A stretch of 64,000 nt of DNA from Perkinsus chesapeaki ATCC PRA-425 (Eukaryota; Protista; Perkinsozoa): NCBI GenBank assembly GCA_013115145.1, contig JAAPAO010000077.1:25057-89056 (forward strand), given 5' to 3'. Positions 11,601 through 62,100 of the stretch are shown here, one piece after another (within the stretch, counting starts at the first letter, position 1; each line of letters starts with the position of its first letter). The position numbers were made by a program, and so were the translations under genes. The notes under the pieces were generated by a model that was not told the origin of the DNA, did no database searches, and was given only the letters and a program-made list of their open reading frames with translations.

Positions 11601-14600
11601 AGGTCAACAGTCACCACCATAATCTGCACAAAAATGCCCCTGCCTCGGTTCGAACCCACGCCCTTACCTGTACTGCGCCACTTTCAAACAGCTCCATTAG
11701 ACAGTCCCTTTCCCTATTGCTCAGACCTTCATGCATGTATCCGACGCCATGCATCAATGACGTCACCAATCCACGCTCGCGAGTCTTCCAACCGTACTCC
11801 TTCGAAAGACCGCTGATATGCTCCTTCATAGCTTCCTCTGATATATGACGGAATCTGCACGCATGCACATAAAGATACAAAATAGGTTAACTCGAATGCA
11901 CCCTTACCTGTCCGGACTGTTATCAGCTGTGGCTTGGAGCATCAGGTCGGCTGCCACCATTCTGCTCTGTCGGCGATCCCCAACAAACACCACCACCGGT
12001 TGAGTCGGAGAGTTCGCCTTAATCAAATTATACCTGTTAAACAAAAACAGTCATTCGTGAATCGCTTCGCTCCGCTAAAGTACGTAGGTCTGGTCATTGC
12101 AGCCATTCTCGCATTTCTGCTGTAGATGTCGTAACCATGAATGATGACCTTCACCGGCACCGCACGAATCTTGGTCGGGAAGTTAAATTGAGAGGATACC
12201 GGTGCGCCCATCCAACCACCGAGATCGTTGGCATTCTGAAAATAAAATGTACCAACCAGGATTCGAACCCACGGCCTCCTTTCTTCAAGAGACCTCCGAG
12301 CCGGATTGACACCAGTGTAGCAATGCAAGTGGCACGTTATCAACCCGATAGTTTCGAAGATTTGCCACCAAATCCCCAAAATGAGTCTATTCCCCAGCGA
12401 AATGGCACTGCAAAAATCTACCGGAAATTTCCACCAATTTTTCCCTTACCAACAACTGTGAGCGGAAATTCACATTTCATCACCGATTTACACCTTGAAG
12501 ATTTTATAAACATAATTCCGCTCGTCTGACTTATGAAAAAGTGCGCCCGATAAAGCGACCGATAAAGGGGACCTACCGAGACGGACGCCGCCAAACCGAT
12601 GATCCTGCATGGCTTGAAAGTCTCTCCATTTTCGGATGCCTGCGCTGCCAAGTTCGAGGTGATATATCTGATACCGACATTCCCAAATCTACACGCATGC
12701 ACATGACACATACCTCATCCTCGACACGCACACTTCCATTGTGGCACCGACTGTAGGGTGATTCAAAAGATGCAGGTCATCGGCAATGAAGAGAGATACC
12801 TGACAATAATGCGAAATGGCCACCAACGGTACATTATCCAACTCGATGCCCAAGTACGGTGGTAAATCCATCGAGCAAAATGCGATTTAATAATCTACAT
12901 TATGATATTAATTCTTTGATGTTACGGGAATGATTCTGATTCTGAATTTCATGACTGGGTAAAAAGTGCTAATTTTTCCACCAAAAACCAATTCCAAAGG
13001 AAATTAAATTTCCCCAATATCGAGAACCTACTCTAAAAAGCATAACGTTGTCATTATTCCACAAAGAACCGCGTTCGAGCACATTCCCTTCCGGCCAAAT
13101 TCAACGGCTTCTCACCTGTTGCACCGGCTTCCGAGTTCTCCACCTCCTCGACAACATATCCCAGTGCTCTGGTGTGGTGATGATAATATGCGACGAATCC
13201 AACAGCTTCAAGTCTTGCGAAGCCTCACCTGACAATCGCCATAATTTAGCTAATTTTCAACCAACGCGAAAATCTTCTCACCAGTGAGTTTCGTAACAAC
13301 ACAGCCGAGGCCTTCTGACCCGAACTTCTTCTGCCAGTCAGTCAACCTCAACTCCGCAAGCCGTTCAAACGGGCACATATATACGCATCGTTTAATCTGA
13401 CAAAATTGGTAAACATGAAACGCTTCGCTCCGCCTACATCATATTCTTTCAGCATCCTTAACACAGCAAACTCGGCACACTGCAATTTTCCAGAGTTGGC
13501 CGGCGCGCACAAGAGCGTGTTCTCATCGCTCTGGAACATCTGTGTGAACGTCTGCGTCTGTATAGGGTTCAACTTGCCAGCTAAGACAATGCGCATGCGT
13601 GCAGGCCTATCTCATACCGCTCTTTCCCCTACTCGCGCCATAGAAGACCTGCTCGGCCTTAGGCCACTTCAGTGCGGTTATCGGCAATGGCATCAGATCC
13701 AACAGCTCAGTCTCTGGAGGATTCCTCTCCGGTAGAATCAAACGACGGAAGTTAACGGGCAACAGAGACTCTGCTCCAATCCACCTGATTGAGAAAAAAA
13801 CGAAATCTTCGCAGTGCGAAAGATACGCCTCAGGGGCTGGCGTATTCCCAACAATTCCAAAGGCGACCCAAAAATTTTCGCGAACCTAATTCGGTTTTTG
13901 CGATCGCCCATCGGCCTTAGGCTTATCAAACGAAACTCAAAGGTAAGCGAAAATTTTCCACTGGTGTCTTTCGATCAACCTATTTGGAATCTTTTGCCCC
14001 GAATGCCATTCCCAAATCCTTACCTGTCCGACACACATCTTATAAAGTAATGTGGCGGCATTGGATCTGTGATAGGCACCGTGAAGGTAAGCGTATGCTC
14101 CTGGTCAGCCTGGGACTGCCTCAGCGCAAACAACTCGTAATATAGTATAGTCTCCTGCTGAGTATCTTCAACAAAGATCCAGAAGGGCTCCGTAGTGGAG
14201 TGAACCTGAAACTCAATTTCTACTACTTCACCCATTTTCGAAATTCCTCTCAAACTGCTACGCGAAATCCCCCTAGTGGCTACGAAAGCAATAGTCTCTA
14301 TAAAATATTCCACCGAATATGATATACTATTCGATATCATACACCTAAGACACCCCATCCCCACAACGCCGCTCACCTTCGGGTCGAACTGGAAATCTGG
14401 CGTCAATGTGAGTTCCACCAGCAGACAGCTACGAGTCAACGGTTGGACATAAGCCGCCAAATCAAGCTTAGGGAACTGATGGACGTATTTGTAGATGTGC
14501 TTTCCTGAAAAGGTCGCGAGTTCAAATCCCAGGTGGGGTATTTTTATAACCTAGTTTCGGCGCCCTCAGAAGTTCACCAATTTCGTGAGGTTTGTAATCA

Positions 14601-17600
14601 TAGTACTGCTCGAAACGAATATCTTTCTTCTCGATTTTACGTAGAATATCCTGAACGTATCCAAGCTTGAAGCGCGCATGATGCAAAATAGCTCATACCT
14701 CCGGTATCTCCTTGAAGTGCCTTAAAGGAGTCTGTACGCTCCAGAAACGCTTCTCGACCACTTTGCTCCAAAGAAGCGCCTTCTTAGCCAGATCGGCCCA
14801 ACCACGACGCAAAGCAATCTCAAATAGAGCACGGAAAATACGACCAGCAGATTGCTCAACATACCTGATCAAACAAAAAGCATGCACGCATGCACAACAT
14901 CATATAAATTCAAAAAGTTGCTATTTCCAAGCGGCGATGTCGGAATACATACCCCTAATCCTAGGCCTTTCAGACCTGCCCCACTGAGTGCTAGAAGGGG
15001 GTCAACCTTGCTATAGCTTTTTACATTAGCATTTATTATTATCTTAATTCCTTAACAAACAGGTTGGTGAAGCATAAAGGACTTAATTTCCAACTGTGTC
15101 CATAACTGAGACTCCACAATACTCCATCATCGTTATTCACTATATTATTATTCCTATAATACCTCAACACTGAAGACCCTCCCTCAGCTTCCCCTCTACC
15201 CCACCATGCCCACACTTACACCATGTCCGCTTGTAAGGCAAATCCATCCAGCGGCAACCGTGAGATATAAGCTTGCAGCAACACGTTTATCTTAGAGCCC
15301 GTCTCCTCAGCACCGCCCTTAACCGGTATGGGCACCTATTTGAGAAAAGATTCCCCAGAGCTTGATTGGCTAACCTCACCTTCTCCACCAGTTTACTGAG
15401 CTCAACCTTCTCCTCTTCTCTAACCGGAATGTATTTGAATTCCGAACTCAATGAGAATAGACGAAGCAGCTCTATATCAGACATGCGGGGCTTTAAATGT
15501 TGATTGTAGACAGCCATAGATGGATATCTGAATTAGAACAGAGGAAGTTACGGTATGAAAATACACAACAAAAAGTTGGAAGATGTCGACCATTTCTTCC
15601 TTAAGTACTTCGTCTAACGAAGCTATCGTTTTATCCTTCGTCAGTTCGACCCTTGCCGAAGCTTCACATGGTCGTTCGTGTTCAGTATATGTTGAGTAAG
15701 TAAAGGGAAGTTGGCCCACTAGTATTAACTGTATAATACTAATTCACATTTCCTATAATAATCATTTGTATAATTTATGCACGTCTCGAACCAGTATTAA
15801 AGATTTTGACGACATCTACAAAAGACTCCCTTCGCCAACGCTGCCTTGCGACCTCGCACGGCAGTGGTGCCAGATGATCATTTCATCCATCACTAGCCAT
15901 CATCTCACCTTCACTTATACCATCACACCATCATCAAAATTTCACGCGCCACAAAATTCCCTTTCTTACTTTATGTAATAATGTGCCGCAACTCTTCCCA
16001 AAGCTGTTATGTGGCATTGACCTGTTCTCTTATCGTATTTTACCAAACCATTCTTATCCAGCATCGACATGGCAGCATGGCAGAGATTAACACGATGCTG
16101 AAAAGGACAGAAATTGACAAATCACACTCACTTCCACAATTCTAAAAATTCTACAAAGCTCAGACCAGCGGGTCCCCCCCCGTCCACGCCGAGCGGCAGA
16201 TAACAAAATCAATATGAAAGCTGGCAAGGACAATTTCGGTGAATTCCCCAGCAGCATTAAAATTCCAATCCAAGCTTACCTGTATGAGCTTAGGATCATC
16301 CCTAGGATTCCCCTCCTCATCCCCCATCGGCACACCGTACAGCTGCGGTGCTTTCATCATCCTTACGTGCAGGTAAGTGTACCCGAGCCAACGGACGGCG
16401 TCATCTCGTGATGCTATGGTGCCAAGTGCCATCTCAGCATTGATCATATCCGGCAGGGCAGATAGCATCTGCGATTCAATGGGAAGTTGAGTATTGTTAA
16501 GTGATAGGTAATATTGAAGCTCAGAACGATTGGTGATGACGATACCTGAGAGAGGGGATGAGAGTGGATTGGACCAGGCTTGAAGTTGAACAAGATTCAC
16601 ACCCGCCATATCAACCCGCATCCCTCAAGCAGCACCAGTGGCAATGCTGTTACCCGTATAACCCAGAACGCACAAGAAATTGATAATTTGATCCATGTTA
16701 TATTATAACAAGAGTATTGATAAAGTGCTTCATATAAAAGTGCCACTACTAATAGCTCTATCCCCCCTATTTCTCACCAATCTAGTAAATGCACTATTAC
16801 CAATGATCTACAACTCGATACGTGTCATTATTATCAATATCTCTCGCCCCCCTACTCACCATGTCCAGTAGTATCATACTGTGGTCGTCCAGCTCTACCC
16901 ATCATCTGCATCATATCCATCGGACTGAGTTCAACCCAATCACCCTTCTCCGGGCTGTACACTTGCGTGCCCTTAATAATAACCGTATGCGCCGGTAAAT
17001 TAACTCCCCACGCCAAAGTCAACGTCGACACCAACACTTGAATGTGACCGTCCGCGAACAGATCCTCCACAGTAGTTCTATCAACTCTGGCCATTCCTGC
17101 ATGATGAATGCCAAAGCCATACTTCAACAGATCCGCCAGATCCGGCGACTTGATCGTGTTCTCAATTTCATTCTCGATAATCTGTTTCGACGCTCCGCTG
17201 TCCGGCAGGAACTTCCCTAAGATTTCCTTCTCCATCGCCATGTCTCTCAGCTCCCTCGCCGTCTTCAACGTATCCTTCCTTGAATGTACAAATATGATAA
17301 TCTGGTTGTTTCCAGCGTCCGCTTCGACCTTTTCAAACAATACTTCGTTCATGACATTAGCCCGTTTAATCGCCTTCTTCGAGCTCACTCCCACATATGT
17401 CTGGTCCAATGGCACCGGTCGATACTCCTGGCCGAAATAGAAGAGCCCACGGTTCAGGTTGACCCTCAAGAAAAGGGCGACATCCTTGTAGTTGGGCAAA
17501 GTGGCCGAAAGTCCCACCAACCGAACGTGCTCCTGAGTCTGCTCAATCTGCCGCAACGTACGAGCAACTATGGATTCGATGACAGGACCACGACTGTCGT

Positions 17601-20600
17601 GTAGAAGATGTATCTGAAATAATGAAACAAGAACCTCCTTGCGCTCAGTAATCTCCACAGTCTATCCCGCGCTCTTCCCCACAACAGTTCTTGCCGCAGT
17701 GAAGCTACTCCCAGTCGGTAAAATGCATACCGACTCGAGCTCCTATGATTCCCCTCCTTCCCCGCATTCCTCCCCCAACTACCTCATCAATTATAATGAG
17801 TTTAACCAAAGCCGTGAAGCCTCGACTTTCGCCCGCCTTCCGAGTGACAACATCCCACTTCTCAGGAGTAGTAACAATAACATTGGTCTGCTCGATCTGT
17901 TCACGGCTGAGGGATTGGTCGCCGGAAAGCTCCTTAACGGTAAGACCGAGGTCTCCCAAACGAAGAGAGAAGGATTGTACGACTTCCTGAAGTACAGAGA
18001 AAATAGCCGGTCGGTATAATCCTTTGCTATCATCCAGGCAACCCCGGTTCGATCCCCGCCCACCTGCACAAGTGCCTTCATTGGCGCGACATAGACCATC
18101 TTGAACGCGCTCGTATCGAAGCCATCTTCAGTCCTATACTGCTTCAACACCTACCACACCAGCAATCCTTCCTATGTCTTCATACCGACTTTTTCTCACA
18201 TTCATGATCGTCAGCATAGCAACATTAGTTTTACCAGCACCAGTTGGCGCACACATCAATAGATTCTCCTCAAACTCGTTGTATGCCACCGGGAAGACCT
18301 GAACAACAGTGCAGCTAGAGGTGTCAGAAAATTCAACAAAACTCCTCACCTTCGATTGTACAGCATTCAACCTCTCAAAGTGCTTGAACGCCGGCCACGC
18401 CCATTCCGGTAGAGCGTCCTTAACCTGATCACCATAATTTAGCTAATTTCCATCGTCTTCGAAAACCCCCCTCTACCTTGATCAAAGCTCCCTCTTTAAC
18501 CTTTGCCTTCGGTGGCGCCTGCACCACCACTTCCTCGTATCCTTTATGGCTCGAGGTAAACACATCGGTGTTCTTAGCGGGCTCAAACGACTGATTGCTC
18601 ATAAACCTAAGCAATCAAAATTACATTAAAAATGCCCGTACCGGGGATCGAACCTGGCTCCTCCAGGCAACTGGAGATTCTCCAGATCCAAGAGCTTGGT
18701 AGGATTAGGCATCTTAGCAGCTTCCTTATTCTCTCCAGTGGAGTCGGGCATCTCAACATCACCATCATCATTGGCTGTAGAGGACCGTTTCTCGCCTTCC
18801 CTCAGTTTCTTAGCCTCGGACCTGAACAAGTTAACTTCACATTCACCCCGCAATACATTAGACATTCCGTAAAAGAAAAGCCCTACAAGACGACCTCCGG
18901 GAACTACGGGCGCAGGCGATATTTTTCTTCCTTTACATTTTTACCAACTAAGTCGGCCTGGAATATTTCAATTTCGCGTGGCTTACAGTGTTCCTGACAA
19001 TCTGACAGCTGCAAATAAGAATATATTTCACTGCCGAGATGCCTTATACCGTGAACCCATCCTCCCACCTTAAATTCCTCCTACGGCTTCCACCGGCCTC
19101 TCTCTCGCCCTCCTTATCCCCTTCGCCAGCCTTGTCGTAGTCTTCGTGATGATGAGCAATACGCCATTCCTCAACAACCTCAGCGGCAGCTGGATCCTCG
19201 GTCATCTCTTTCTCCAAAGCTTCACGCTCCTCTAAAAATAAAAGTACCCTCCGTGGGATTCGAACCTGTGCGGGTTTGCCTACCTGGGGTTTGGGCTTGA
19301 TTTATCTTCGTGCAGTACCATATCTTTATCCTGTTATTAACCAAGATCTTGCAGAAGTCGAAGTGCTTATATTTGAAGATTTGCACCAACTTATTCTCAA
19401 CGCTCTGCGAGTCCGGCAACCTCAGCACGTCCAGAATAGATTTCTCCACCGAGATGACTTCCGAGCTATCCTTAACTCTTTTACCCTGATAACATATGAA
19501 TACAATAGATAGTAATAAAGTAGGTAGGCCACCGCCGGGCCACAAACACATTACCCTAATACCAAGCGAATAAAGGGGCGATGATAATACACAGTACAAA
19601 GGTACCGAGACATATACGAAGAGGAGAAGAAGGAGCAAAAGAGGAAGTTCATAAATTACCAGACAACTTCACCTAGCAACACCAAGGCAAACTATATCTC
19701 AACTGGTTAGACCAATGATACTTGTTGTACATTTTACAAATGCATCTTAACTGTTCAGAGACTAGAACGCGCAGTCACATGAACCACAGGCAATTATCCA
19801 ACCTCAACCGACCCAAGAAGTTTATTACAAGTTCTCTCTGAAGCCAATGTGAATGGATCTTCTGGACTGGCAGGTCGGTCGAGGAAGTGTTCCTCTTCTT
19901 CGCTGCCGGGCCTTCATCCCCCTCCTCATCACCAGCCTTAATACCGGCATCTTCATCATCATCTCCACCTAGAAAAGTAACAGCATCGATTCGAACCCAC
20001 GACCTTCACAATAGCAGCCCAACCCCTTAACCATTACCCCGTTTCCTCCTCTTTCCGCCAGCGTCCATTCTATCATCCGCATCAGAATCTTCAGAATCGC
20101 TACTGGATTCATCCGACACTTCATCAGCGTACAACATATCATCATCTCCTCCCATCTCTGAAATTAATCCACATACCCTTCCAATGGAACGAATCCACAA
20201 TCACACCACTCGATGACGAACAGCTCAACTAGTTTCAGTAAGATATCGAATAAGTTATATTATCAATCTCACACCAGTGGCCGCTCATAAGCGTATTCAC
20301 TGATCGATAATAATAATATAACTATATACAGTACTAGACATCCCACAATTCCTATTATGTACCATAATAGTTTATATACTCTATGGATAAAATATGTATT
20401 ACCCCTACCACACTATAATGACACTGCACTCAATAACAACCAACCTTCCCCCAACTCACCATCATTCTCATCATCCTCATCAAAAGTAACAGCAACACCT
20501 GCCGGATCATCAGCTGCCCCTGCCAGCAGTGCAGCATCGACCTCCTCTGCTCCACCAGCACCGCCGCCCTCAGCGGCAGCCACTCCTTCATCCTCATCAA

Positions 20601-22057
20601 CAGCAAAGTCATGGATTTGTTGGGACAGCCTTAACAGTTGAGTATAAAGCTCATTGGTTAAGGAGCGAGGTGGCAGGATCTAAAACGAAACCCATTTTAA
20701 CGGAGAAAACCCGAAACCCGAAAACCCGGATCCCATGCCGAGTAATATGTATACCTACACATGGCGTGCAAAACCCTAAAGTCATGCATCAGGCAGGGTA
20801 AACGTTTCCCCGATCCCCTCCCTTCACAGCACCGACAGTTTCGAACAAATGACGTACTTATCCATTACCGAAGTGCAAAACTGCCAAACTTCGCCCGCGA
20901 ATTATTCCCTACTAGTGACACCCTTTTTGCTAGTCCTCCCAAATCTCATCGACTTGCCCCAAGCCCCCTATCCTACCTCCTCCACATTCTCCTGCTTCAA
21001 AGCATCCTTCTGGTCCGACTTCAGTGCCATCAATATCTCATGCGCAGCTTCCCTCAATACCGTACTAGTCTCACCAACCAGCACAGTTGATAACACCGAT
21101 AACATCTCATCATACGGCCTTTCAGATGCCCGGGATTTCGGTCTGAGGGAGCTCCTATAAAACCCCTCCTCCACCCCAGAATCTACCTGTATATATCTTC
21201 TCCTGCCTCTCCCACAGTAAGAACTGTCTCCCCTTTATTAATATCAATACCCTTCCGACGTTTACGTAGACCTTTATCACCACCAGCCTCTGTAACAGCT
21301 TTCCTGAACAGATAAAATGCAATAGTAATATTACAGGATTTGGTCGCGTAAAAATTTAGCACATGCCGATTTAATTAACTTCACATTAAAAAATGTAGAT
21401 ATCCGAAATACGTTGATTTCAGACAAGATACAAAATAATTTAATCGGCGAAAAACTAATGGGCAAATTTCTCAAATTTATATTCATTTACCATTTCGACT
21501 TTCCACATCAAAATCGATGCAACGTTCCAGTGTACAGCCTCGCGAGAACTAATAGACACTAATACGTAATTACGGGTTTGAGACAAAGCGGGGTGTGAGA
21601 GAAGTATTACACATGCCGTCGTTTAGCTGCCAAGGCCGCCTCTGGCTTCGGCTTGGTCTTCAGGACCTTGTCTCCCATGGTGTGCATTTTATGGTACCGC
21701 AGAGTCTCTGGCTCACCTGGAAAAGAGAATCGTATATTGCAGATAAATCAACCTAAGTTGCATCTTACTCACTTAACCTCAAGATACGACCCATCCGTAT
21801 GACTACCAAGTGAACTATAACTGAGCCTAATCCGAATTTAGCGCACCTAGCTTAGATACTTTCTACTACAAACAAGGTGGGCATCTAGCACCTCCCCTAC
21901 AACCTATAAAGTATCTTTCTCGCGTGAAGCTAAGATATCCCCTATTACCCGTAGGTTCATTAGCCAGATGACTTCCTCCACCAGGATCCCTCTGTAGGAC
22001 TAAGTTACTGTTCTCCTTATACTCGAACCGCTTGAAACGTTCGAACTCCTCAGCCAT
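8611..22057 (-). CDS. SNRNP200: U5 snRNP 200-kDa Ski2-like RNA helicase (Brr2), ~44 introns
   Basis: N-terminus [24 protein letters not shown]. First cassette: [14 protein letters not shown]|[36 protein letters not shown]. Sec63 region: [21 protein letters not shown]. Second cassette: APANSGK, ADDLHLL. C-terminus YTL|[20 protein letters not shown] (TGA at 8611-8613). Frame is preserved across manually placed GT-AG introns. Confidence 0.97.
11624..11667 (-). pseudogene. tRNA 3'-end fragment forming most of a 44-nt Brr2 intron (sense)
   Basis: GTAAGGGC GTGGG TTCGAAC CGAGG CAGGGGC A TTTTT GTGCAG. Confidence 0.75.
12243..12293 (-). pseudogene. tRNA-Leu-like variable arm + T-arm + terminator at the 3' end of Brr2 intron 12236-12576
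   Basis: GTCTCTTGAAGAAAGGAGGCC GTGGG TTCGAAT CCTGG TTGGTAC A TTTT. Confidence 0.7.
14505..14550 (+). pseudogene. tRNA 3'-end fragment, antisense within a 46-nt Brr2 intron
   Basis: AAGGTC GCGAG TTCAAAT CCCAG GTGGGGT A TTTTT. Confidence 0.75.
17987..18063 (+). pseudogene. Degenerate tRNA-like sequence, antisense within a 77-nt Brr2 intron
   Basis: TAGCCGGTCGGTA (A-box-like) ... GGCAAC CCCGG TTCGATC CCCGC, truncated at the exon boundary. Confidence 0.6.
18607..18658 (-). pseudogene. tRNA 3'-end fragment whose B-box straddles the 5' splice site of a 47-nt Brr2 intron
   Basis: exon ...GCCAG|GTTCGATC CCCGG TACGGGC A TTTTT... Confidence 0.75.
19232..19283 (-). pseudogene. tRNA 3'-end fragment forming a 52-nt Brr2 intron (sense)
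   Basis: GTAGGCAAACCCGC ACAGG TTCGAAT CCCAC GGAGGGT A CTTTTATTTTTAG. Confidence 0.75.
19969..20037 (-). pseudogene. Decayed tRNA-Ser(GCT)-like body forming a 69-nt Brr2 intron
   Basis: GTAATGGTTAAGGGGTTGGGCTGCTATTGTGAAGGTCGTGGGTTCGAATCGATGCTGTTACTTTTCTAG. Confidence 0.65.
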
Positions 22058-23235
22058 GGTGAAGAAGAACAAGGAAGAAGATCTGATCAATCAAATCAAT
22101 CAAGTGCCAGAATGCACTTGATAAAAGCATGGGCAGTTGCGAATGAAAGAACATAGAAATAAGTAATTCATAATAGTGAATTTTTAGGAATTCCGAATTG
22201 CTTTTTACTGTCCTTTCATGAGCCCCTATATTATGATGATTAGTAAATATTAAGTGATGAAGGACTTATAGATAATTGTGATACTTACAGGTGGAAGCAA
22301 AATAATACAGATTGAATAAAGAAGAAGCAATGCAGAGCCTAATTTTCACACAAGCCTTGGAGGCATTCAATCAACCTATTTGGAATCTTCGACAATCGTT
22401 CACAAAACGAGATCCTGTCATATATCTCAGCCAGCAACCTATGGTCATCCTAGGAAGCCCCCAAGTCCAAAGCTTGGCAAAAGATACGGATCAGGTTGAT
22501 TGGAGACCCTCTGCGTCCCTCACGAATAACCTAATCCCATGTTCTGGGGGCCAAATAAAGCGAAATAATATCCCCCAAGGAAAGCCACATCCACGCAAGC
22601 AACCTTGAAGTGTGTATAACCAGCGAATCCAAAAGGGAGTATTGCTCGTCAGCATTATAATATTGTATATTCCCAGGTACTGCAAACTAACAATAAAACC
22701 TTAACCACAATTTGGCGAAAAGTTTATAACGCGAAAGAAAAGCGCGCGCCCGAATGATCGGCGCACTTTGAAAAAGGTCGGGGATTGGTATCGCCTGTGG
22801 GAGCTGTTCTCTTGTAGCTCCTTTGTTTACTTTTGCCCATTACTAGAAGTGTACTCCGCTATTATTGATGCGTAGCCTTGGTATGGGTGTACCCGGTACA
22901 CCTTTGGTTCAACCAACAACCTTACCAACACAAGTAGGGAGACAGCAACACTAGAACGCACCCTATAGATTTGACAACTACTCTGAGACTTAGTTTTACC
23001 AATATAGGTTGACTTTTATTTTCCTCAGGAGATAGTAGCCCACTTCTGGGTCCCCGATACCTCCGACCCCTGGTTGCTGCTCATGCTACTTACCGTGGCG
23101 TGGTGTGTAAGTCAGGCCCCATGGCAAGATATCTTTTACTTCCGGAAAATCGGGCTTTCTTCGGGACTCTAGCAATTCGCCCTTGAGATTCTGTGCTTTG
23201 AAAATCTCTGTTATCTCCTCGACAACCAAAGGCTT

Positions 23236-24600
23236 ATATGTCGATACTACTGTTTGATGTTAATTTAATGCTAATCATTATATTATTCCTATTATACTTA
23301 CGTTTGCGAATCTCATACGGCCGATTCCGAGAGCTGTCGACATCCGTAATTGTTGGTGAGATATATGATGGAGTTCTTTCAAAAATATCATTCCTCCAGG
23401 GTCACCCTGTAGTGACTCAATTTCAAATAATAATCTTTTTGTACAGTAGAACTTCACTCCATCACCCGTCAACTCGTCGAACGCGTTCTTTATGTTCTCA
23501 GATCCTTTATTCGGTCCTAGTGTGCTCGATTGGCTGCATCAATTCGGGTCGCCGAGCCAGGACTCCTATGGGCCGAAAGTTGGCACCATTGACGCCGTTC
23601 TTGGCCAATAACCTCACCAGCCTTGCCAACACAATACTCAGGTCAGGCACAGGCATGCATCGACACAATTTCTGTCTCCCTCAGTTTTACAGCAGTATCA
23701 GTCTTTGCCATACAGCTCAGATCTGACGGAGCAACCATCAGTTCACCCCGGCTAGTTGCAGGACCTTTAATAGAGTATCTTTCCATCGCCTACGTTCTTA
23801 ATCGAGCTTGCTCCCTCCAGACACACCTCTATATTCTACATTGCTTTTGCAGCTTATTGTGTTTACGATATGCTCTGGGTTATCTTCCTCCAGCCCAGCA
23901 TCGATAAGGTTCGTCACTATCATAATACACTAATTACATCTCAATTCTAGGTCATGCTCGGCCATCATCTTTTATTTTTTGCGGTCGTATGGCTTCTCTA
24001 CGCTGAAGAGGTTTTCCCCCTACTAGCAGCCACGCTACTATTACAGGTAGTCCTCCTCCTGCTTTACCTCATATCAGCTCCGCCTCAGGAAGCATCTGGG
24101 CCTTTCGTTTGTATGTTGCATGTCCTAAGAGAAATAGGCATCACCAAAGGGAAGCTCTATACTGCTAATGGCGTCACAATGACCATCACCTTCGGTGTTT
24201 TCAGAGGTACATTATCACCCCTCCACATGTATGTTGAATTTCTCCCCTCAGTGTTGCTCCCATTGCTCTCCATAATACACGTCTTTGTACATTGGCACAG
24301 TTCTGGTATCAACAACCGAATCAATTGGCGGATAATACTTTGCATCACCCTTATCAATGCCGGATATTGTTTGCAGCTTTATTGGTTTGGAAAGATTGTA
24401 AGAGCACCTATATAGGCTCGTCACAACTACTGCTCAGATTCGGGGCCTCATCAAACACGTCATCGACGCGCCTTCTGTTATGTCCGAAAATGGGGAAGAC
24501 GACCTCGAAGATGCCAAACCATTTCTTGAGGACAAAGTAAGTGGCGCTATCAATCAGTATGATATAGTTTGCCCATCAGGTCCGGCAAGATAGAAAGTCG
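23236..24600 (+). CDS. TLC (TRAM/LAG1/CLN8) domain membrane protein, spliced
   Basis: Hydrophobic exons with TLC-type motifs MLGHH, EASGPF, FGVFR and LQLYWFGKI. Ends approximate. Confidence 0.65.
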
Positions 24601-28129: not shown

Positions 28130-29141
28130 CACACGGGGACATTTTTAGCGCGAGCGCGCGCTTGATAGGGGTCGGGCTCGATAATGTGATATAGATTGAG
28201 AAGGCACGTGGCAGATGATACAGCAAATGGTCATGATTGCTCCATTGTACCGGATACAGTGTACTCTTGTTTATCACGCATATGCCCCTCTCATTGCCAC
28301 ACCTCCGAGGTATTGAGTTAGCATTTGACGACTCTAAAATGGGATATGATGTTCAACATTAACACATTCAACCTCGACCTATTTCGCACTTCAAAGGGTT
28401 GGCGTGATAGCTAATCTCGAGCTAGGGCTCATTGGTTCCACCTTTCACCGGTTGCTTCTTCGACAGTTTGAAGGCAAAGTTGCTCGCTTTCTTTTCCGTT
28501 TACTAAAGTTGACTGCCCCCAAGGAAATTGCTCACTTGGTCATATTCAAGGCTGTAACCATAGCATTAACGGAACCTTCGTCTCAATCGCTACGCCTAGT
28601 CTTTCAGGTGCTTCCAAGCGACACCCTCAGTCTCTACGATACATTATATTCGTGAAGTTTTTGCTTCTCCCACGAACCTTAAAGTAGTGCTGCCTTCGCG
28701 TATGGCTTCCCAAAGGAGAGTTAGGCTACTCGTTTTGTAGTTGGATCCTGAGTCGCTGGAGTGTAAACTGAGTGCTAGTAAGCCAAAGAGTCCAGGAGGG
28801 TTCCTGAGACGGTTGCCAGTGTGGTTTACTGGTTTCCTGTCCTTTGCGAGCCTGCACTATTGGCACAGCAGTGCTCATCGAGCCTGTTGGCAACTGTTGC
28901 CCTAGGGAAGGCATCGCCCTTCTCGAAGCGCGACCAATACCGGGTTCTTGGCATATTTCGAATTGATCACTCATCCCTCGGGGATGACAATTCCTCAGTC
29001 CTTTTCAAAGCAAGTCCGATGAGCACTCCTGAGCCAGGGATCCTGACGTCACTCCCTGCCTTGTATGATAACGCGTTCTCGAGCTTTCTCGAGCTCAACT
29101 TGGAGATACGCAACACTGCTACACTAGTGGGAAACCGCTCA

Positions 29142-30353
29142 TCACTTTCTGCCTTGCACTTCATTAAATATTTGATCCAGAAAAAACAGCATAAATTGAT
29201 GTCTTTCTTCGGCGATCTCTCGCCCAGTTTTGGTCTTCATGGTGCCCTTCAAGTGCAATAATTTCTCATAGAAGTGTGCTATTGCTGTTGGGCTTCCTTC
29301 AGCGTATCTGATACCATAAGGGAGGATACTGCCTGCATTACCGTGACAAACGGATACGTAACAGTCAAGCTTCTTAAATTGATCAAGATGAGATTTTTAG
29401 GCATCCTGTAGACTCGATGTCATCTCACGTAATCATTGTCAGGTAGTAATACGCTCCCAAAGAGGGAGCAATGCTTTTTCGAAAATCGACACTGATTGCT
29501 AAGCCCCATCTAGGATTAAGGATGTACCCTCAAAGGCAGCGAATCCCGAGTTGCAGCAACGTCAACGTCTCCCTATCAAACTTCCTATTGGCAGGATTTC
29601 CCCATTTTAATCGATACAATACAATCCCTTCCCGCCCGACCTCACTTGGCAGCGGTAGGTCTGGTGCTCTCAGGATCACCCTCAAACTCTGTCCGTAGTT
29701 GCATCTCCTGCTTGGCTCCTTCAGATATTATCATCCTATCCTTCGCCCCAGAGTAAGCCATGCACCTTTAACCCATTACAGCACCTCCCCCTCGAACCAC
29801 TCTCACCGACAAACTCCAATCGCTCCTATAGCATCCAGTCTGTCCCCATCTTGCACAATCGCAATGTAAGGATCGCAGGCAGCAGCCTCGCCGCTCCTGC
29901 CGTTCTTCAACTCGGCAGAGTAGCTCATCTGGTCCGAAAGCTTCCGCAAGATTTCATAGAGAATCTTACGTTCTTAATTTTCGTTATAATAAACTCCGCC
30001 GTCGGTCTTGGAAAACCAACCGGAGCCTCCTCGAGCTTCTCTTGGACCTCCACGGCCTTCGCGTTTGGATCCTCGCAATACTTCCGATCGAATGAATCGT
30101 GTAAGTAAGCAATGCAGAGAAGCAGATTCAGATCAACTCCCGCAGAGATCTGCGAACGTTGCCTATGTCAAATGAGAAGAGCAGATGGCTGCTGCACCTG
30201 GTCTCTGAGATAGATAGTCTTGACGGTGGCAACAACCCTTTCTATGTGGGCCATGTCATGAGACGAATCACATTCCTCCATCCATTTTGTAACCAGTTGC
30301 TTAACTAGTTCAACTTGAGTATCGGTAGCGCTTACTGGTTGATGAGAGCTCAT
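29142..30353 (-). CDS. HD-domain metal-dependent phosphohydrolase, spliced
   Basis: DSSHDMAHIERV, IAYLHDSFDRKY, IVQDGDRLDAIGAIG, HFYEKLLHLK..MKTKLG..IAEERHQFM. Confidence 0.85.
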
Positions 30354-30460
30354 GGCGATGTGCTCAGTTAAATAGCAACTGCTGTGGATAGATCCTCCAG
30401 AAGTTTCTTCCCCAATTAACACTAACTTCACCCCAGCCTCATCGACGTTGAAACAATAAA

Positions 30461-53147: not shown

Positions 53148-56100
53148 TCACTCACTCAATGCAACTGCTGCTCTCATACGATACTTATTAGCATTTGTTA
53201 TCAAATGTCTCACGGAATGATGTCTAATTCCAGATCTCTTCGACGCCTTATTATCAACACCAATCAATCCGCTACCATCCCCACGTCCTGCCACTGAGAT
53301 GTCATCATCATCATCATCATCGCCCTCACTCGCCGAGAGCCTCTGTACACTAGTTGGGGTATTATTCCCGTTGGTTGTTTGCTCCGTCAGTATTCTAGAG
53401 CCATCTTGATGGGCAGCGGTACTTAGTCTGGTTTCCCTTGGCCGATTCGCACTATTCATTACGGTCGGTCTACCAGGAAGCGTTCCAACATCAACTGGAG
53501 TATCATGGGCACTGTCCTTCCAGAACGCTACGAACTGCGTCAGCGCGGCGATATCATCAAAGGTGAGAGTGACCTCGACAGGCTCCAGTGCGGCAGGATT
53601 GGCGAGATGGATGGCGTGATGATGCGGACAAGCTGGAAGTTCTCCTTCTTGGCATTTAACTTTCAATACGAGGCCGTCCACGGCGACCAATGAGTGTCGA
53701 CCACATTTATAAGCTACTGGATGATACCGTCGAACATCGAAGGCTTCCAATGGCCCGGCGACCAAATCAGGGCGAAGAACCTGAGCGACAGAGATAGACG
53801 CTTTCAAGAAAAATAGGGTACCTCAATGACATGATCCTCGACTGTGTTGCTGTCACCAGCTATGAGAAGTGCGACTCTCTTCAACGGATGCTCTTCCTCT
53901 TTACCCATGTAAACGTTAGCGCCGATGGTGATATGAGTCACGTGATGGGTGATGGCCGAATCAAGAATGATCTGAACCAATAATGACACAATTTCGGGGA
54001 CAGCATCATGTTCACCTCGGAGAGTCTGTGACCTGCGATCATTGAAGCCGCCATGGCCACCATTCGATCATCATATCGAACAGCGATCAAAGGATTGCTG
54101 GAGAAAGTGACTCGAGCCTCTCCTTGCGGGGCGTAGACGACAGGAGCTCTCGCTGGGCAGTTGCATGTGTGATCCTGGCAGTAGTTGAATACTTGCGGCG
54201 AGCGAGAGCGGAAGGGCTTACGTTCACATGTATGACCGGAAGGGAGTTCTGTACAGTCATTTGAGGTGCTGGTTTAGTGAACTTTGAGGCGTAGTAAGAA
54301 TCAACCTGACAATACTTCTGCCAATTAAAGAATTACAACATCTCAGCACCTTAGCATTGACGACTCTCCCCCATCGAACAAGGAAACCAACAGCAGCGTA
54401 AGGGTCGTCGAAATAGACTGTCAACTTTGGCTCCCTGTTGGGCTGCGTTGACGAATCGATGAAGTGTGAAGGACACGGCACTGTCAAGGCGAACTCGAGC
54501 TCCTTGGTCTGCTGAATGGTAGCATCAGCCTTGTCGCAGATGAAGTATCCAGGCGTATCTTTCATCTGCAAGAAATACCAGCTTCGAGCTCACCGGCTAA
54601 AGTGTTCAATCCACGAACCTGTAGATAATATTTTGATCTGTCCTGCTCCATAGTGGCAGCGATTGCCGGACCGAGATCGGAGGATCCTCTCAGAACCCGT
54701 GTCGAGTGCGACATGATCTCAGGCCCGAGCCCAACCTGATTGATTGAATATAGTCCAGAAGGCTATCACAAAACAAATCCCGTTGCCACGAGTGATCTCC
54801 AAAAGCATCCTCAACGGAGAGGTAATTTTTTGACTATGAAATGGAGGCGAACGACAAGTGAAGTAGACTGGAATGTCGTACAGCACTGTTGAGATATAAC
54901 CGATAGATATGATAGGTACCATACATGATAGATTATAGTGTGATTCTATCCTATCTTCGCTATTATCACAGCGATGAAAGATATGTCTCCACAACTGTAC
55001 CCTAGCACTGGTTGTAAGTAGATATAGAGCCTTTATAAGCCTGCTTTTGTGAACTATATAAGATCTCTACTTCTAAGTTTATGAGTGACCCGAAACCGAG
55101 TAGTGTTCTGAATAACTCGACAACTGACATACACCTGCTGCCTTTCAGTACACCAATTAATCTACCAAAACCACTCTTTCAACAGCGCCATTCTAATCTC
55201 TACAAACGACATAATACACTACTACAGTAATTCACAAACACATTGTCAGTAATGAGCTGAATCATATCATTCAGCTTCTTGAGACGAGCCATAAAAATTT
55301 GATGCCAATTTTTTGCCTTTTCTGGCAATTCTAATCTTCATACATTTCAAACTACGAAGGGTGACTTCCCCAGACAAACTACTTACCGTTCGTTTGGAGA
55401 ATCCTCCCCATTGAATGGCAAACGATACAGCAGCTGACTCTGGGCATTCCAGCTTAACGAAAGCCTTGCTTGTCTCATCGAAATCACAAAGAGCTCTGAC
55501 TGTTGCCACCGCGGGAGCACCAGCATCTTCGGGGATCTCCACGGCAGTTATGACTCGTTCACACTGGTAGTCGAAGACTGATGGCTCGTAACGATAAGGT
55601 GTCACTTGGAAGGTGAGCTGAAAAAAAACTGCTGTCGGCGGGGACCTCAATTCTCAGGTAGATTTGTCGTCATTCCTCAAACGACTCTACATAGGCAATT
55701 CAAACGGGAAAGGTACTATCGTGGCAAGGAGATTTTCCCGAGTTCTATGATCAACAGATTCGTTGAAACTCACTTTGAGCTCTCGCTTGGTCATGTAATT
55801 ATCGTTCTTATTTCCGGGCTTGAATGTAGCGCCCTTCAGTGATGCCGATAATAAAGTGTGAAGGTTATCAATACGTTGGACTGTCACCTTCTGACAAGCC
55901 TTCACCAAATCGTGAGAGATATCCAACTGAAACAAGGCATAAAACATACAAGTCAACAGTGCCCTACTCCGCTGTTATCCGAGTCACCCCAACCATAAGC
56001 GAGGTGCTGCGCCCAAATTGAGCCGTCACAGTGAATCTCGTGACGCTCTTTGAACTCCGATCCACAGTATGCCACAACAATATGGTCCTTCTCGCCTGCG

Positions 56101-59100
56101 TTGATGATAGGCGTTGTCACTGGTGCGCACGACAGAGGATTGGAGGCATCGAGCTGAAGAGTTGGAAATCTCGAAGGTTTTATTCAACCTGACTTACCGG
56201 CAGCTCACGTTGATTGACCACTCGAGATGCACCAAGAGGACCTCCGCAGTGCTTCATTATCGGGTCATCGATTCTCACCTGCTCGAAAATCGTAACGCTA
56301 TCGCCGGTTGCTGCTGAGACCTACTCTAGCGTCTTTCTTGCCACCCCACCAGATGGCAACATGGAGTGTGCTTTCAACACCACCACAGTCCAAATGCTCC
56401 GCAATCGAGCAGTCTTCTCCAGCTGGGCAATTTTCGATGACGTAGTCGACGTCGATCCAAAAGAACCAGTCACGGTAAACAGGGTCGTGGTCCATTTCGC
56501 GAACAGGTTTTCTAAGATTTGGTACGCGAACGGGCTCCTAAAAAGATACTCTTTGATCTCAGGTTTTCGGGGCGGAGCCTCACCGATGTGGTCACGCCCA
56601 TCTCGAGGAAGCTCGGAAGTTGGTCGAAAGCCGGCAAGGATGGTATCGTCTCAGCGTTACGATTTCTGTCATCCTCAGGAGGGCGATCGAAAACCTAAAA
56701 GATACTTAATGATTAATAATAATTACACATTAACTCACTCTGCTGATCTTTGTAGTGTCACGTCCGAATCGATCATGATGATGACGGTCACCTCTTTCAT
56801 AAGGTCTAGCGGGTCCGTGAGAGACCGACGTCTGCGCCACAAACACATCAACATCGTCGAGCTCTAACAGGCAGCACTCACCCTAACGTTGACGTTGGGG
56901 TAATAACCGCCGCCACTGGGATGGGGATACCCAGGAGCTCTGATGCTGGTCTGAAAACGGAAGTCCATCACCGATTCGGTGCCAATACTGAGGAGATGAG
57001 TCCTCTCGGTTTAAGTTGCACATAAAATGGACATAAGTTGGACTAAACCATTTTGCCCGTTGGAAACACACAGACTCAGACGTGGACTCACTTTTATTGT
57101 AGTTCGGAATCCAGGCCAACCGACATGTCTCCGTCCACTTTGACCATTGGCAGTAGGAACCTGAAGGCATCATCATCATCATCCAAGATCTACTTAGGTA
57201 GTTCCATCCATACCGGAGAGGTCGGCACTGGGACCGTTGGCGATGAGGCAGTCGGTACTGGTCGAGTGGGTCGAGGCGCAGCAGTTGCCTGAAGGAAAAT
57301 CGTCTGGTAGCTTTATGCCGCCGACGAGCTCACTGTGCTGCTATCTCGGTCACCAGAGTTGCGGAATCCTCCATAATTCGCTCGCTCAGAGCTGACGAAT
57401 CCAGGACGCCGAGGGGATGGTGAGCTGGTTGGGACCTACAGCACTCGAGATGGCAGCCAAATTTCACGCTTCTCCGTTACCTCGATTTCCGGCTCTTCAG
57501 TGGTGTAATCGGATGGCCAAGTGAGATAACGTAGCCCTTCAGTGCCGTCAATCTCAATTTCTATTGTTGCTGTCAACGGACTCATACCATTCCTGTTCTT
57601 GCACTTGGTCACTTCAGGGACGGCAATCTGAAGCAGAAGCATCGATGAAGCACTTTACAACTACCAACGCACCTCGCGGGTTGGGAAGCCCATAAAGGTG
57701 TTCACGTCCACAGCATCGCCGGGCTCCATGCAGTCCACCGTGGCCTCCTTAAAGCAGTCCAAAACGAAGCGGTAGATCGCTGTGGTGGCGCCTTTATTGA
57801 CCACCAAAACAGGTGGAGTGTCGGCAGTTGACTTGCATACCTCCGAAGTGCCGTCGCCAAACTACCACAAGAAGAGAGTGAAGTGATACATTTCAAAACA
57901 TATCACACTTCACTACTTCTACCCATATGATACTTCTAAATTTTGTCACTAAAGAATTTCCAGTTTCTAGAGCGGCAAAAGATCCTCTGCCGTTGCTATT
58001 ATTTCTTCATAATTATAGCTCATCTGGAGCTGCTGTTTTAAATACACATTTTTATTACATTTACTTTATATTCATATTACGAATACAGGTGCGGGGTTTT
58101 CTGGATGCTCCCTTAGAGTGAATCAATGCTAATCAGGAAGCCATCTAGGCTCACATAAATGACATGATCCTGTGGAATCTAGAAATGCACTAATGCGAAG
58201 TTTCAGTGGGGATTTCGCTAGAAAGGACAGTCGCAGATAAAAAGGGAATGTCAAATGCGGACACTTGATCTTCCTCTTTCTGGTGTTAGTATAAGTGATA
58301 TAATAAAGTGGACATGAGGGCTCCCGATTTCCACAGGGCGGAATCATCGAAGATCAGTAATAATAAAACAAGTCTTACCTGCAACATTTTAGCTTTATGG
58401 ACTCGATCAAAAAGAACCGCAGTGATGTCTTCATAATCTTCCTTGCCGTCACGCTTCACTTTACAGGTGTCGAACTTCGATGGGTCGAGGGAGAGCTGAA
58501 AGACATACCAATGTGGCCACTGCTTTCGAGAGGGTCGTTTGGTGTGCGAGATGTCCGGGGCCCGAGCATCGGCTTCACTTCCCAGCGAAACCGATTGGAT
58601 TCAGATACGGTGGCGTTTAGTGGAGCTCTTACACATATGCTATATCATACAATGGCTGTGTGGTCTAGTGGTATGATTCTCGCTTAGGGTGCGAGAGGTC
58701 CCGAGTTCAATTCTCGGCACAGCCCTTCATCCACCCACGATCTTTCCCCACCTACCACTGCACTAGCATTATATCCTCCCCAGTTCTTAGCAAACTCATC
58801 AGAGCTGTCTCCATCATCATTGCATTCAATCATCACGTCACCCTCCACACCGTCACACTTGGTTCTCATCATTATGGCATCTTTGGCCATTATCAGAGGA
58901 TCTTTTATACCATAGTCGCATCGGTACATGTCACTTGTCTGAATGGGAAGCTCACAGGGATCAAGCGAGCAGCTGGGCAACAGCCTCACCATAAGATATC
59001 TACTCGTCACTTCTCCATTCATATCGGCAGTAATCCACGCTTCAACCAAAGCAGCGCCCTTCAAGTTACGGACATCCTTGCATTCTCCGACAACCGTGGA

Positions 59101-62100
59101 GTCTATCATAATCTAAGGGCATCAAGTGTTGCACGTATGAAAAGCGAGACGGAGGGAGAGCCTTGAGCTCGATAACGATGACCGAAATACTCTATTATGG
59201 ATGAAAATAATGGCAATAGCGGAAATATAGGATCCTGTGGTGAAGGAAACAACCACTTCGGCAGGCGCCGTCCAATATGAGACTTCGGAAACGGGGAAAA
59301 TAGGACGCTTCAAATGTGATGACGTATCTTTCAATTACAAGTAAAGTCACCGTCGCAAAGGTGCTACGGTGGCGGCACCAACTCGAAATGCAAATGGTCT
59401 CCGCACTCAGTAATACAACTCCGTAACTTCTCATTTATTTGCCAGCTTACCTTCGGGTTTGGATGCTCTCCCCATCGCGCAGCAATCCTCAGCATCGGGC
59501 CGATCTCTCCGAGACCACCACAAGATAATTCCTGCTTCGCTCCGCCGCCGCCACTGCAGCCAACCGTCATATGAATATTATCGCCACGGAAGATGAAATC
59601 CGGCACGGGTGTTTCGCAGACATCATCGCCCTAATAACAAAGACCCTACCGAGTCTCAAAGCTCCGACTGTCGCTCACCCATCGCCTTGTCGTTCCTTGC
59701 CATGTTCCATCGACCGAGACGTCATACGTGAGGTCCAGCAAAGGCTCTCCGCCCGGGCGCTCGCATTCAAGCAAAAGTTCAGTGCTAACTTGAACCTAAG
59801 ATACGCTGCTATTTCACAGTTGCTGCCGTTGGGCCATACTTCTTGCTTCGGGTATTTACCCCACTGATGAGCGACACGAACGGCGCTGCCAGGGTCTTGA
59901 CATTTCAGCACGACAGCGTCTTTGCCACCACAGTCGATCTTCACGTGGAATTCTTGCTCAAGGTCGATATCCTCGGGAGCATCAGTCACAGCAGCGCATT
60001 CTAAAGGATCCTTCATGGAGGCGAACTGCAAAAAGGGAATTCGAGCGTCTTCTATACGACCATCGGCCTACAGTCAAATGGCGAGAAGTCTCATCGTAGT
60101 AGGCACCGGTGAGCTCCGCGGACTGGGCACCGATCTCAGCCTCCTTGCAACTCTCAATCACATCAGCAGGCAAACCGATCTGAAGGGGAGATGACCCAGG
60201 TTCGATCCACAGAAACGGTATTTCTACCCCCGATTTCTCCTTGTCGCCCCATCCATGAGCGAACAACTGAGCCCATTCGAGGCCATCACACCTCACTCGG
60301 GTGACCTTCTCTCTGTTCGGACCACAGTCAGCAGTCACAACGTAACCGCCTTGCCCGCTCATCATGATCGGTTTCGTCACGGCGTCACATTCCAGAGGAT
60401 TTCCGGCATCGTACTGAAAAAAATCTCGAGACCTCTCTCAGGATCTCGAAAGCTCACCGGAAGTTCTCGCTGCGCCACAATTCTCGAGGCTCCAATAGGA
60501 CCACCGCAGTGCTCCATAATCGGGTCATCAATTCGCACCTATCACAACTTTGACAATCGATCCAGCCGACCCCGCCCTACTCTAGCATCGGACTTGCCGA
60601 CCCACCACTTCGAGACGAAGAGTGTAGTGGCCACATCACCACAGTTCAGATGATCGAACGCGATGCACTGGTCGTTTTTGCACTCGGTCGCTGTGGCGTT
60701 GAATTCAAGCTCGACCCAGAAGTGCCAGGCACGGTAGACCGGATCGTCATCTTCACTGTTGATGATTTCCCGTCTGACTTCCTGAAAAAAAAGCATGAAA
60801 AATGCAAAGTGTGGACGCAGTAATGGAGATTAAGAGTTCTAACCTATTTCCAACATGAATCGGGAAGTTTCGAAAAACAAGCTTGACTAGAAAATTTTGC
60901 TGAGAATTCCTCAAAGCTACTAAACGAAGTAAAACGCTAAGATATCGTAACAGAGCCAAGATGGACCTCACCTGACTGTTGCGCTGCCGTTCGAGCAAAC
61001 TGCTTGCCTTCGGTGGGACGAGATCGTCACCTTCTAGAGAAACCTGAATGAAAACATTCATTGGCAAAATTTTCGCGTCTTCGACTCACCCCGGTGGTAA
61101 CAGCTGGCTTCCAGGAGGCTGGCCAAGTCTGACAGAAAAGCACACTGAAGCTCCAGTAGCAGCAGCGGGCTCTACGAGTGATCGGGCACCTGTGGTGCCA
61201 TCCGTATTGATGCGAATGGATGCACGCAAAGGAGACATCCCGCCAGTCTTTGACTTGCATTTCTCAACCTCGGGAACGATTACCTAACCGATTCACTCGG
61301 AAAGTTTCACCCAAAAACGTTCCCTACCTCTCGAGTGCGCAGGCCGAAGAACGTGGAAACATCCACGGCGTTGCCCGGCAGAGTGCAACTGATGTCGACG
61401 TAGTTCTTGCGATTGCAGGGCAGCTTCAAGTTGTAGGCGGCATCCTCCTCAGTATTGACAAACAAGCTCGGCGGGGAGCTTGGTGCCACGCAGGTCTCCG
61501 TGGCTTTGTCGGGGAACTGAGGAGAAATAATACCATTAACGCATTTACGGGTCGAAGAGGTTCTCATGGTTGGTCTACGATACTGGTAATGTAACGAGTA
61601 TCAAAGTGGAATTTCACTGTAAAACCAACTTCAACGGGAAATTGAACGTCATTAGAAAGCCTTTTGACAGGGATGATCCTTAATTTCAGCGAGCGTATCT
61701 TCGAATATATAAGCTTCAATCCAACACCAAAAATATTGCTCACACTGAGCTGTATGAGACACAGCACGGACTGAGTCGGCTGAGCAGAGTTGGGAGAGAT
61801 AGCATTTGCGTACGCTGTCTATCTACAGGAGAATGCATCAGCTTTATAAGCTGAAATAATGCAGAGATAGCCAAGCACGGTGTCAGCCTCGACCCCGCCG
61901 GCGATGGACTTGAAACTCTCCGTGAGAGGCTATATAGAATGACGAGCAATGCTTACCACTATGCTTCTGAATCTATTCTCAACATTATACGTGATTGCTG
62001 ATATCTTCTCCATGTCTGACTTCTGACCAGCTCTCATCGCCGAACACGACGAATATAATGAAGGATCCAATAACATCTGAAATACGAGTAGTCACTATAA

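Follow-up and report, generated by a model that had tools for sequence, protein, structure and literature searches.

tRNA-gene relics with a conserved B box in short spliceosomal introns of Perkinsus chesapeaki

The locus and its relative

The DNA considered here, referred to as the window, comprises the final 64 kb of contig JAAPAO010000077.1 of Perkinsus chesapeaki (assembly GCA_013115145.1); its G+C content is 46% and its genes are densely packed, with very short introns. The subject of this report is a set of ten sites within the window at which the 3′ end of a tRNA gene can be recognized, namely the B box, the acceptor strand, the discriminator base and the T-run serving as terminator of RNA polymerase III (Pol III), nine of these sites being located in introns. 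The hosts of the nine are the gene of the spliceosomal helicase Brr2 (minus strand, 8.6–22 kb), an ABC-transporter gene and a modular gene, whose introns were delimited by reading frames and homology. The Brr2 gene model, built by a custom protein-to-genome spliced alignment with a 2201-amino-acid Brr2 (P0001) as guide, contains about 48 introns, mostly 43–53 nt long, and is imperfect at ~13.3–11.8 kb, a stretch that includes the surroundings of the intron at 12236–12576.

A single related locus, L001, was compared. It is a Logan contig of 8.6 kb from a related Perkinsus and is collinear with positions 14373–24402 of the window, the neighbouring gene included. The exons of the two are 72–81% identical, and the fourfold-degenerate sites of a large Brr2 exon agree at 42 of 102 positions (41%), so that neutral sites are close to saturation. 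The cross-species comparison concerns five Brr2 intron pairs from this one relative, the copies at 11624, 12243, 31369, 39499 and 60180 lying outside it. A protein search for further orthologues with the Brr2 exon 12023–12379 yielded none, and the matches of an aspartyl protease search were restricted to the window's own contig, with 100% identity over positions 25439–46551.

Ten 3′ ends of tRNA genes

All ten sites listed in a first-pass annotation of the window, made from the letters alone, are present. As that annotation had it, six (B boxes at 11655, 12268, 18653, 19265, 19996 and 31394) are sense and four (14520, 18047, 39509 and 60200) antisense, and nine lie in introns by frame and homology, the copy at 31394 falling outside coding-region introns. 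The enrichment beyond chance that it had claimed is borne out by the counts: the pattern GTTCRAWYC-N11-ATTT, which corresponds to the B box, the remainder of the T stem, an acceptor strand of 7 nt, the discriminator A and the T-run, has seven exact matches, the expectation derived from 100 dinucleotide shuffles of the window being 0.01, and in the shuffles GGTTCRAWYC and RGTTCRAWYC are expected 1.04 and 2.48 times, respectively, compared to the 11 and 16 occurrences actually found. The spacing is likewise as described, being exact in seven copies, interrupted in the copy at 19265 (A-C-TTTT) and one base short in that at 19996; in most copies, furthermore, the T stem is broken and the 5′ half absent.

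The copies can be aligned without gaps, at tRNA spacing, to the consensus AAGGTCGCGGGTTCGAACCCCGG..GGGGTATTTTT or, in its fuller form, AAGGTCGCGGGTTCGAACCCCGG..GGGGTATTTTTA. A 37-nt sequence-only profile recovers nine of the window copies with 22–32 bits (E from 1e-5 to 8e-9), a weak tenth one at 18044–18058 (8.3 bits) and more copies in the L001 contig. The weak site (17987/18047) has a B box together with remnants of the D and anticodon arms and is devoid of A-TTT at the fixed distance.

The introns and the spacer that hold the copies

Seven copies are found in Brr2, whose introns lie on the minus strand. The intron at 11624–11667 (44 nt; frame and Brr2 homology; 30.7 bits) consists almost entirely of a sense relic that spans the variable loop to the T-run; after the T-run comes the 3′ splice site, GTGCAG. 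In the 341-nt intron at 12236–12576, placed by spliced alignment, the sense relic (12242–12278; 27 bits) adjoins the 3′ splice site (TTTTATTTTCAG). The sense relic of the 47-nt intron at 18607–18653 (29.2 bits) has the GT of its B box GGTTCGA as 5′ splice site (G/GTTCGATCC, the slash marking the junction), and the orthologous L001 intron (4955–5038) retains GGTTCGATCCC and TTTTTAAT. A further sense relic occupies the 52-nt intron at 19232–19283 (22.5 bits), whose L001 orthologue is without a B box, and the 69-nt intron at 19969–20037 (frames in both species; 22.7 bits), also sense, is tRNA-like throughout and alignable over its full length with a 76-nt L001 orthologue (z = 4.3 for the pair). 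The two antisense relics of Brr2 are on the plus strand: one fills the 46-nt intron at 14505–14550 (29.8 bits), having a tRNA-Pro-like T arm (z = 7.0 against tRNA-Pro), a host 5′ splice site that reads GTTATAAAAATACC and a 3′ splice site, TTTTCAG, that is the reverse complement of CTGAAAA; the other, in the 77-nt intron at 17987–18063 (8.3 bits), is a near-full-length decayed tRNA with the B box at 18046–18055 and D-arm and anticodon-arm remnants, the B box of its L001 orthologue being at the 5′ splice site. As for the distances between neighbouring Brr2 B boxes (among them 11655, 12268, 18050, 18653 and 19265), three of the six gaps, successive ones, measure 603–613 bp (p = 0.0017 by permutation over intron positions, a post hoc test), with no evident gene-wide periodicity.

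Two more copies are intronic. The ABC-transporter intron 39144–39540 (minus strand, ~397 nt; frames and ABC motifs) carries an antisense relic at 39499–39535 (plus strand, 29.7 bits) immediately past the host 5′ splice site (CAG/GTATGATAAATACC), and the 48-nt minus-strand intron at 60180–60227 of the modular gene is filled by an antisense relic on the plus strand (25 bits). The length of the latter is a multiple of three and it has no in-frame stop, so that its retention would add 16 residues and cause no truncation; the paralogous intron found at the same position after 55968 is plain and 41 nt long. The modular gene itself is large (minus strand, 53148–64000) and made of repeated Cys/Trp-Gly exon modules, the paralogous exons 56117–55968 and 60377–60228 being 42% identical.

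The tenth copy (31368–31404, minus strand; 32.3 bits, z = 7.3 against tRNA-Pro) is placed, by NCBI gene ranges and frames, in the 137-nt spacer between the divergent coding regions 30461–31313 (minus) and 31451–32455 (plus), 55 nt upstream of the ATG of the former. Its T-run is followed by TTTTCCAG; this arrangement (31349–31404, minus strand) could represent the acceptor of an intron in the 5′ untranslated region or of a spliced leader. Two small RNA runs of P. chesapeaki contain no Brr2 and have no match to positions 28900–34800.

The sole intact tRNA gene detected in the window by ARAGORN and Rfam, a tRNA-Pro(AGG) at 58654–58725 (plus strand; Rfam 56.9 bits), lies in an intron of the modular gene, antisense to its host, and a distance of 31 nt separates its 3′ end from the 5′ splice site of the host. 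Between this 3′ end and the host exon (within 58654–58760) there is no run of four or more T but just TCTTTCC, unlike the relics, in which the T-run comes directly after the discriminator base.

Origin from tRNA genes

That the copies derive from tRNA genes, as the first-pass annotation had proposed, is hardly open to doubt. Five relics give z = 6–13 against tRNA-Pro(AGG), with a likeness extending beyond the B box, compared to z ≤0.4 for four control introns; an antisense relic of L001 (intron 8315–8394) matches tRNA-Pro over 43 nt from the D loop to the T loop (z = 13.3 against shuffles), and z is 6.6 for the L001 relic of intron aa557 and 6.0 for that of intron aa250. The copy at 12268 and the 69-nt intron show no match to tRNA-Pro and, therefore, more than one tRNA type probably contributed.

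What is left of these genes is incomplete. Apart from two pairs that the B-box consensus dictates, the T stems are mostly unpaired, their pairing being about at the level expected from the consensus alone, and no complete tRNA is found at the relics by ARAGORN or by the Rfam tRNA model. The latter misses every relic, both in the whole window and in 17950–20100 at E values of up to 10, since it gives partial tRNAs no score; relaxed ARAGORN output is mostly noise. A scan of the window with an A-box pattern disclosed no A-box partner of any relic: the pattern occurs 10 times against 3.5 expected, yet its matches are paralogous coding repeats of the modular gene or the real tRNA. A reading of CTGAAAA at 14505 as a Phe(GAA) anticodon loop was discarded in view of the tRNA-Pro match of this relic and its orthologue, and two resemblances between copies, namely the 3′ flank common to 18653 and 31394 and the 5 of 7 acceptor positions shared by 18653 and 39509, are not clearly beyond chance when all pairs are considered.

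Perkinsus marinus is reported to have unusually many tRNA genes, with more than 500 copies of five tRNA types, as well as Dada transposons that target tRNA genes (Kojima and Jurka, PMC3706591), both of which are relevant to the spread of tRNA genes in this lineage.

Age of the relics

All 19 comparable intron positions are common to the window and L001. Among these 19 introns, five bear relics in the window and four in L001, and all four L001 relics occur, in the same orientation, in introns that are relic-bearing also in the window (hypergeometric p = 1.3e-3, or 8e-5 if the orientation is taken into account). Thus, the comparison of orthologous introns across species that the first-pass annotation had called for finds relics in four of the five L001 introns, and the relics very probably predate the split from the L001 species. 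More distant genes offer no power to date the introns, those of P0001 and Amoeboaphelidium being intronless and none of the few Galdieria Brr2 introns coinciding with those of Perkinsus.

Conservation of the B-box block

The four relic pairs, anchored on the B box, were compared region by region, the inter-species identity of each region being judged against the neutral 41%. Identity reaches 34 of 40 (85%) over the B box (positions 52–61; p = 1.4e-8) and 11 of 16 over positions 62–65 (p = 0.024); it is 18 of 32 over positions 44–51 (p = 0.061), 12 of 20 in the T-run (p = 0.07) and 10 of 28 (36%, not significant) in the acceptor strand. As the relics were ascertained in the window, the B-box test is unbiased for L001. 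An empirical null, consisting of 2539 10-mers from non-relic introns and their best match in the orthologous introns, gives probabilities of 0.06, 0.012 and 0.003 for at least 8, at least 9 and all 10 positions, respectively; the best matches of the five relic B boxes in the orthologous introns of L001 comprise 10, 9, 8, 7 and 5 of 10 positions.

The B box is, in all probability, under purifying selection. The role played by its bases in splicing, on the other hand, is not fixed: in the aa425 pair (18653 in the window) the B box coincides with the 5′ splice site of the window intron and is internal in L001, and in the aa557 pair (5596 in L001) it is at the 5′ splice site in L001 and internal in the window. 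Conservation in both orientations and without a fixed splicing role points to a reader that acts at the level of DNA.

Probable pruning of nested genes and reuse as splice signals

The window and L001 together offer a graded series, which begins with an intact tRNA gene placed antisense inside a larger intron with flanks of its own, continues with 69–80-nt introns made almost entirely of decayed tRNAs and with 44–52-nt introns containing just the stretch from variable loop to terminator, and proceeds to introns in which a splice site reaches the B box and, finally, to loss. In the aa1178 pair an 80-nt L001 intron with D-arm and anticodon-arm remnants faces a 46-nt one in the window, so that the pruning can be seen directly. 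The claim that tRNA genes are pruned to B box and T-run is upheld by this series, from intact nested tRNA-Pro to loss, which suggests that nesting would have come first and pruning later.

The suggestion that the relics act as splice signals also stands: a polypyrimidine tract is furnished by the T-run, GGTTCGA contributes the GT of a 5′ splice site, and CTGAAR, read as its reverse complement, forms a 3′ splice site. In the sense copies, which end 4–21 nt before the 3′ splice site, the T-run plainly serves as the polypyrimidine tract. More generally, the terminator end of all copies faces the nearest exon, at the 3′ splice site if sense and at the 5′ splice site if antisense; in the antisense copies with a T-run (14520, 39509 and 60200) the latter lies 4–7 nt past the 5′ splice site, and the rule holds also for the 341- and 397-nt introns and for the intact tRNA-Pro.

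Other Brr2 introns, all on the minus strand, display modules of their own. A second family (11340–11384, 10683–10725, 9459–9510 and 13397–13428), alike over the whole length of the introns and introner-like, has GCGGAGCGAAGCG with a T-run and GYTTACC right after the 5′ splice site and matches neither U6 nor any other Rfam entry; a third module, TGATCGATTTG, precedes the 3′ splice site by 10–20 nt in the introns 11472–11519, 9641–9687, 9245–9290 and 9873–9918.

What keeps the B box?

The explanation favored here, which has perhaps an even chance of being right, is that the copies are pruned relics of tRNA genes whose B box is kept by selection, most plausibly as a binding site of TFIIIC comparable to the "extra TFIIIC" (ETC) sites of other eukaryotes. 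According to this scenario, tRNA genes would once have been nested in introns and, in one case, in a short intergenic leader, as the intact tRNA-Pro still is; the genes would have died and deletions would have cut the introns to a minimal size of ~44–52 nt, leaving a remnant from variable loop to terminator in which the tRNA fold was lost and the acceptor strand randomized. Purifying selection would have continued to act, as a constraint on the DNA, on positions 44–65 and chiefly on 52–61 (GGTTCRAWYC), whichever way the relic points and wherever in the intron it lies, while the T-run of sense copies would have been taken over as a polypyrimidine tract and other bases of the relics as splice sites.

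The likeliest agent of this selection would be TFIIIC acting through its τB module, the part of the factor that binds B boxes; the relics could thus represent transcription-independent ETC-type sites within gene bodies. That TFIIIC is the reader of the conserved B boxes is a proposition for and against which the scales stand about level, while its binding and the ensuing effects on insulation, chromatin organization or RNA polymerase II (Pol II) would follow by analogy with established knowledge. Isolated B-box TFIIIC sites without TFIIIB or Pol III, bearing extended B boxes that are conserved, are found in yeasts, worms and mammals, including humans, and have barrier or insulator activity (PMC12409998). 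The domesticated ETC-like site is favored since the relics agree with each feature by which such sites are recognized in sequence: GGTTCRAWYC in nine of the ten sites and AGTTCAAATC in the site at 14520 conform to the ETC-type consensus GGTTCGANNCC, neither an A box nor a foldable tRNA and, hence, no complete Pol III gene accompanies the B box, and the latter is conserved beyond the neutral level (34 of 40 against 41%) in the four pairs.

Several observations weigh against this explanation. The copies were ascertained through their B box, so that their likeness within the window is circular and the cross-species test alone is unbiased; the comparison is based on five intron pairs from one relative; the constraint is not absolute, the B box of aa1178 being degenerate (7 of 10) and that of aa341 having been lost, with an L001 intron devoid of a B box; the non-relic introns are incompletely saturated (z up to 2.9); and the orientation of the terminator end toward the exon finds no explanation in TFIIIC binding. 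Some of these observations are what would be expected if the copies were the neutral wreckage of dead intronic tRNA genes, without function, and the apparent conservation arose from detection bias, incomplete saturation or occasional gene conversion, for which tRNA genes as abundant as those reported from P. marinus would offer donors (PMC3706591). This possibility is rather improbable, given that L001, which was not ascertained by the B box, gives 34 of 40 against the neutral 41% (p = 1.4e-8) while in these relics the neighbouring acceptor strand stays at 36%, and that gene conversion should have refreshed also the acceptor and T stem, both of which are randomized.

A similarly low probability is assigned to the possibility that a tRNA-derived mobile element, akin to short interspersed elements (SINEs) or to introners, created the introns upon insertion by supplying its own splice signals, the relics thus being traces of intron gain. 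Several introns, 44–52 nt long, are pure relic; the relic provides AG/GT-like, T-run plus AG and YTTCAG signals; an exon invariably adjoins its terminator end, the introns of 341 and 397 nt included, a rule that, in the antisense copies, leaves some room for an element that helps to create a splice junction; other Brr2 introns form short repeated families; and the copies at 18653 and 31394 share ATTTTTAMTGTAATTT past the T-run. However, junction repeats average 3.0 nt in relic introns and 2.8 nt in the others, so that there is no excess of target-site duplications, and terminal inverted repeats do not exceed 4 nt, again as in ordinary introns; outside the tRNA core there is little likeness among the copies; the intact tRNA gene, with flanks of its own, occupies part of a larger intron; and the paralogous intron at the same position as a relic intron is plain. 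Moreover, four of the five comparable copies are shared with a relative nearly saturated at neutral sites and the 19 shared introns offer no presence/absence differences. Given this sharing and the lack of target-site duplications and terminal repeats, the proposal that such sequences "repeatedly colonise" introns, if taken to mean an ongoing activity, finds no support.

It is still less probable that the motif operates in RNA, its UUCGAW core being a branch site of the pre-mRNA or, in very short introns, an intronic enhancer. TTCGAA, the core in DNA, is a palindrome and would place UCGA in the transcript in either orientation, A58 of the sense copies is 22–41 nt from the 3′ splice site and the T-run clearly is a polypyrimidine tract; yet two introns have the motif at the 5′ splice site and a third has it 60 nt away from the 3′ splice site, ordinary Brr2 introns do without it and one copy lies outside any coding-region intron. 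The branch-point version of this idea was rejected in view of the position of the core and its misfit to yUnAy. Finally, residual Pol III mini-genes, in which B box and terminator would drive short functional small RNAs, might account for the exact tRNA spacing of the two elements in seven copies and for the 12 of 20 T-run identity, but this is very doubtful, as A-box partners are absent (the A-box matches being coding repeats or the real tRNA), T stem and acceptor are unconserved with no conserved RNA product apparent, and the T-run conservation is not significant (p = 0.07) and, in sense copies, is explained by splicing.

If the conserved B boxes are indeed TFIIIC sites, Perkinsus would be a case of large-scale domestication of a Pol III promoter element within genes transcribed by Pol II. 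The role of TFIIIC outside Pol III transcription could then be tested in a neighbour lineage of the dinoflagellates, a group with highly unusual chromatin. A more far-reaching and rather speculative extension is that hundreds to thousands of domesticated intronic B boxes constitute a dense, selected lattice of TFIIIC anchors that organizes chromatin or paces Pol II and co-transcriptional splicing; such a lattice, if it exists, would be an architectural system of gene bodies, unlike the sparse intergenic ETC sites of yeasts. Full-text literature searches found no paper describing tRNA-relic introns or intronic B boxes in Perkinsus. The series documents the life history of an intron's content, from nested tRNA gene to pruned relic supplying splice signals, and the relics will distort both tRNA-gene counts and intron annotation in Perkinsus.

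Relation to known systems

Among the known systems, tRNA-derived SINEs share with the relics the presence of tRNA-derived B boxes across introns and a possible recruitment of TFIIIC; indeed, the B boxes of MIR and B2 bind TFIIIC and can act as insulators. A SINE, however, would have a head with A and B boxes, an unrelated body and an A-rich tail or one resembling that of a long interspersed element (LINE). No common body or tail is found among the copies, which also lack the A box and insertion footprints and whose end, unlike that of SINEs, is a Pol III terminator adjoining the discriminator base.

Introners, described in Micromonas, Aureococcus, dinoflagellates and Amoebophrya, are short introns with sequence modules common to unrelated genes (PMC7789003), and in this respect the relic introns are similar. 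Introners, however, are near-identical, lineage-specific and provided with direct and inverted repeats, whereas the relics are old and diverged, sharing only the tRNA core and differing in acceptor strand and flanks; their junctions have neither an excess of target-site duplications (3.0 versus 2.8 nt) nor inverted repeats longer than 4 nt, and four of five relic introns, like 19 of 19 intron positions, are shared with L001.

A closer relationship exists with intron-nested tRNA genes and pseudogenes. The antisense tRNA-Pro of the window is such a nested gene and the relics are its decayed counterparts, having a similarity to the genuine tRNA-Pro(AGG) that goes beyond the B box; ordinary tRNA pseudogenes, on the other hand, decay uniformly, whereas the Perkinsus relics keep the B-box block and are trimmed to fill a minimal intron.

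The ETC sites of budding yeast and humans and the COC (chromosome-organizing clamp) sites of fission yeast resemble the relics in being isolated, often extended B boxes, conserved between relatives and unaccompanied by a working tRNA gene, and the position of the copy at 31394 between divergent genes is like that of yeast ETC sites. The Perkinsus relics, which are known from sequence, differ from them in that they are visibly derived from tRNA genes, number about ten in 64 kb and are lodged mostly in tiny spliceosomal introns, in either orientation.

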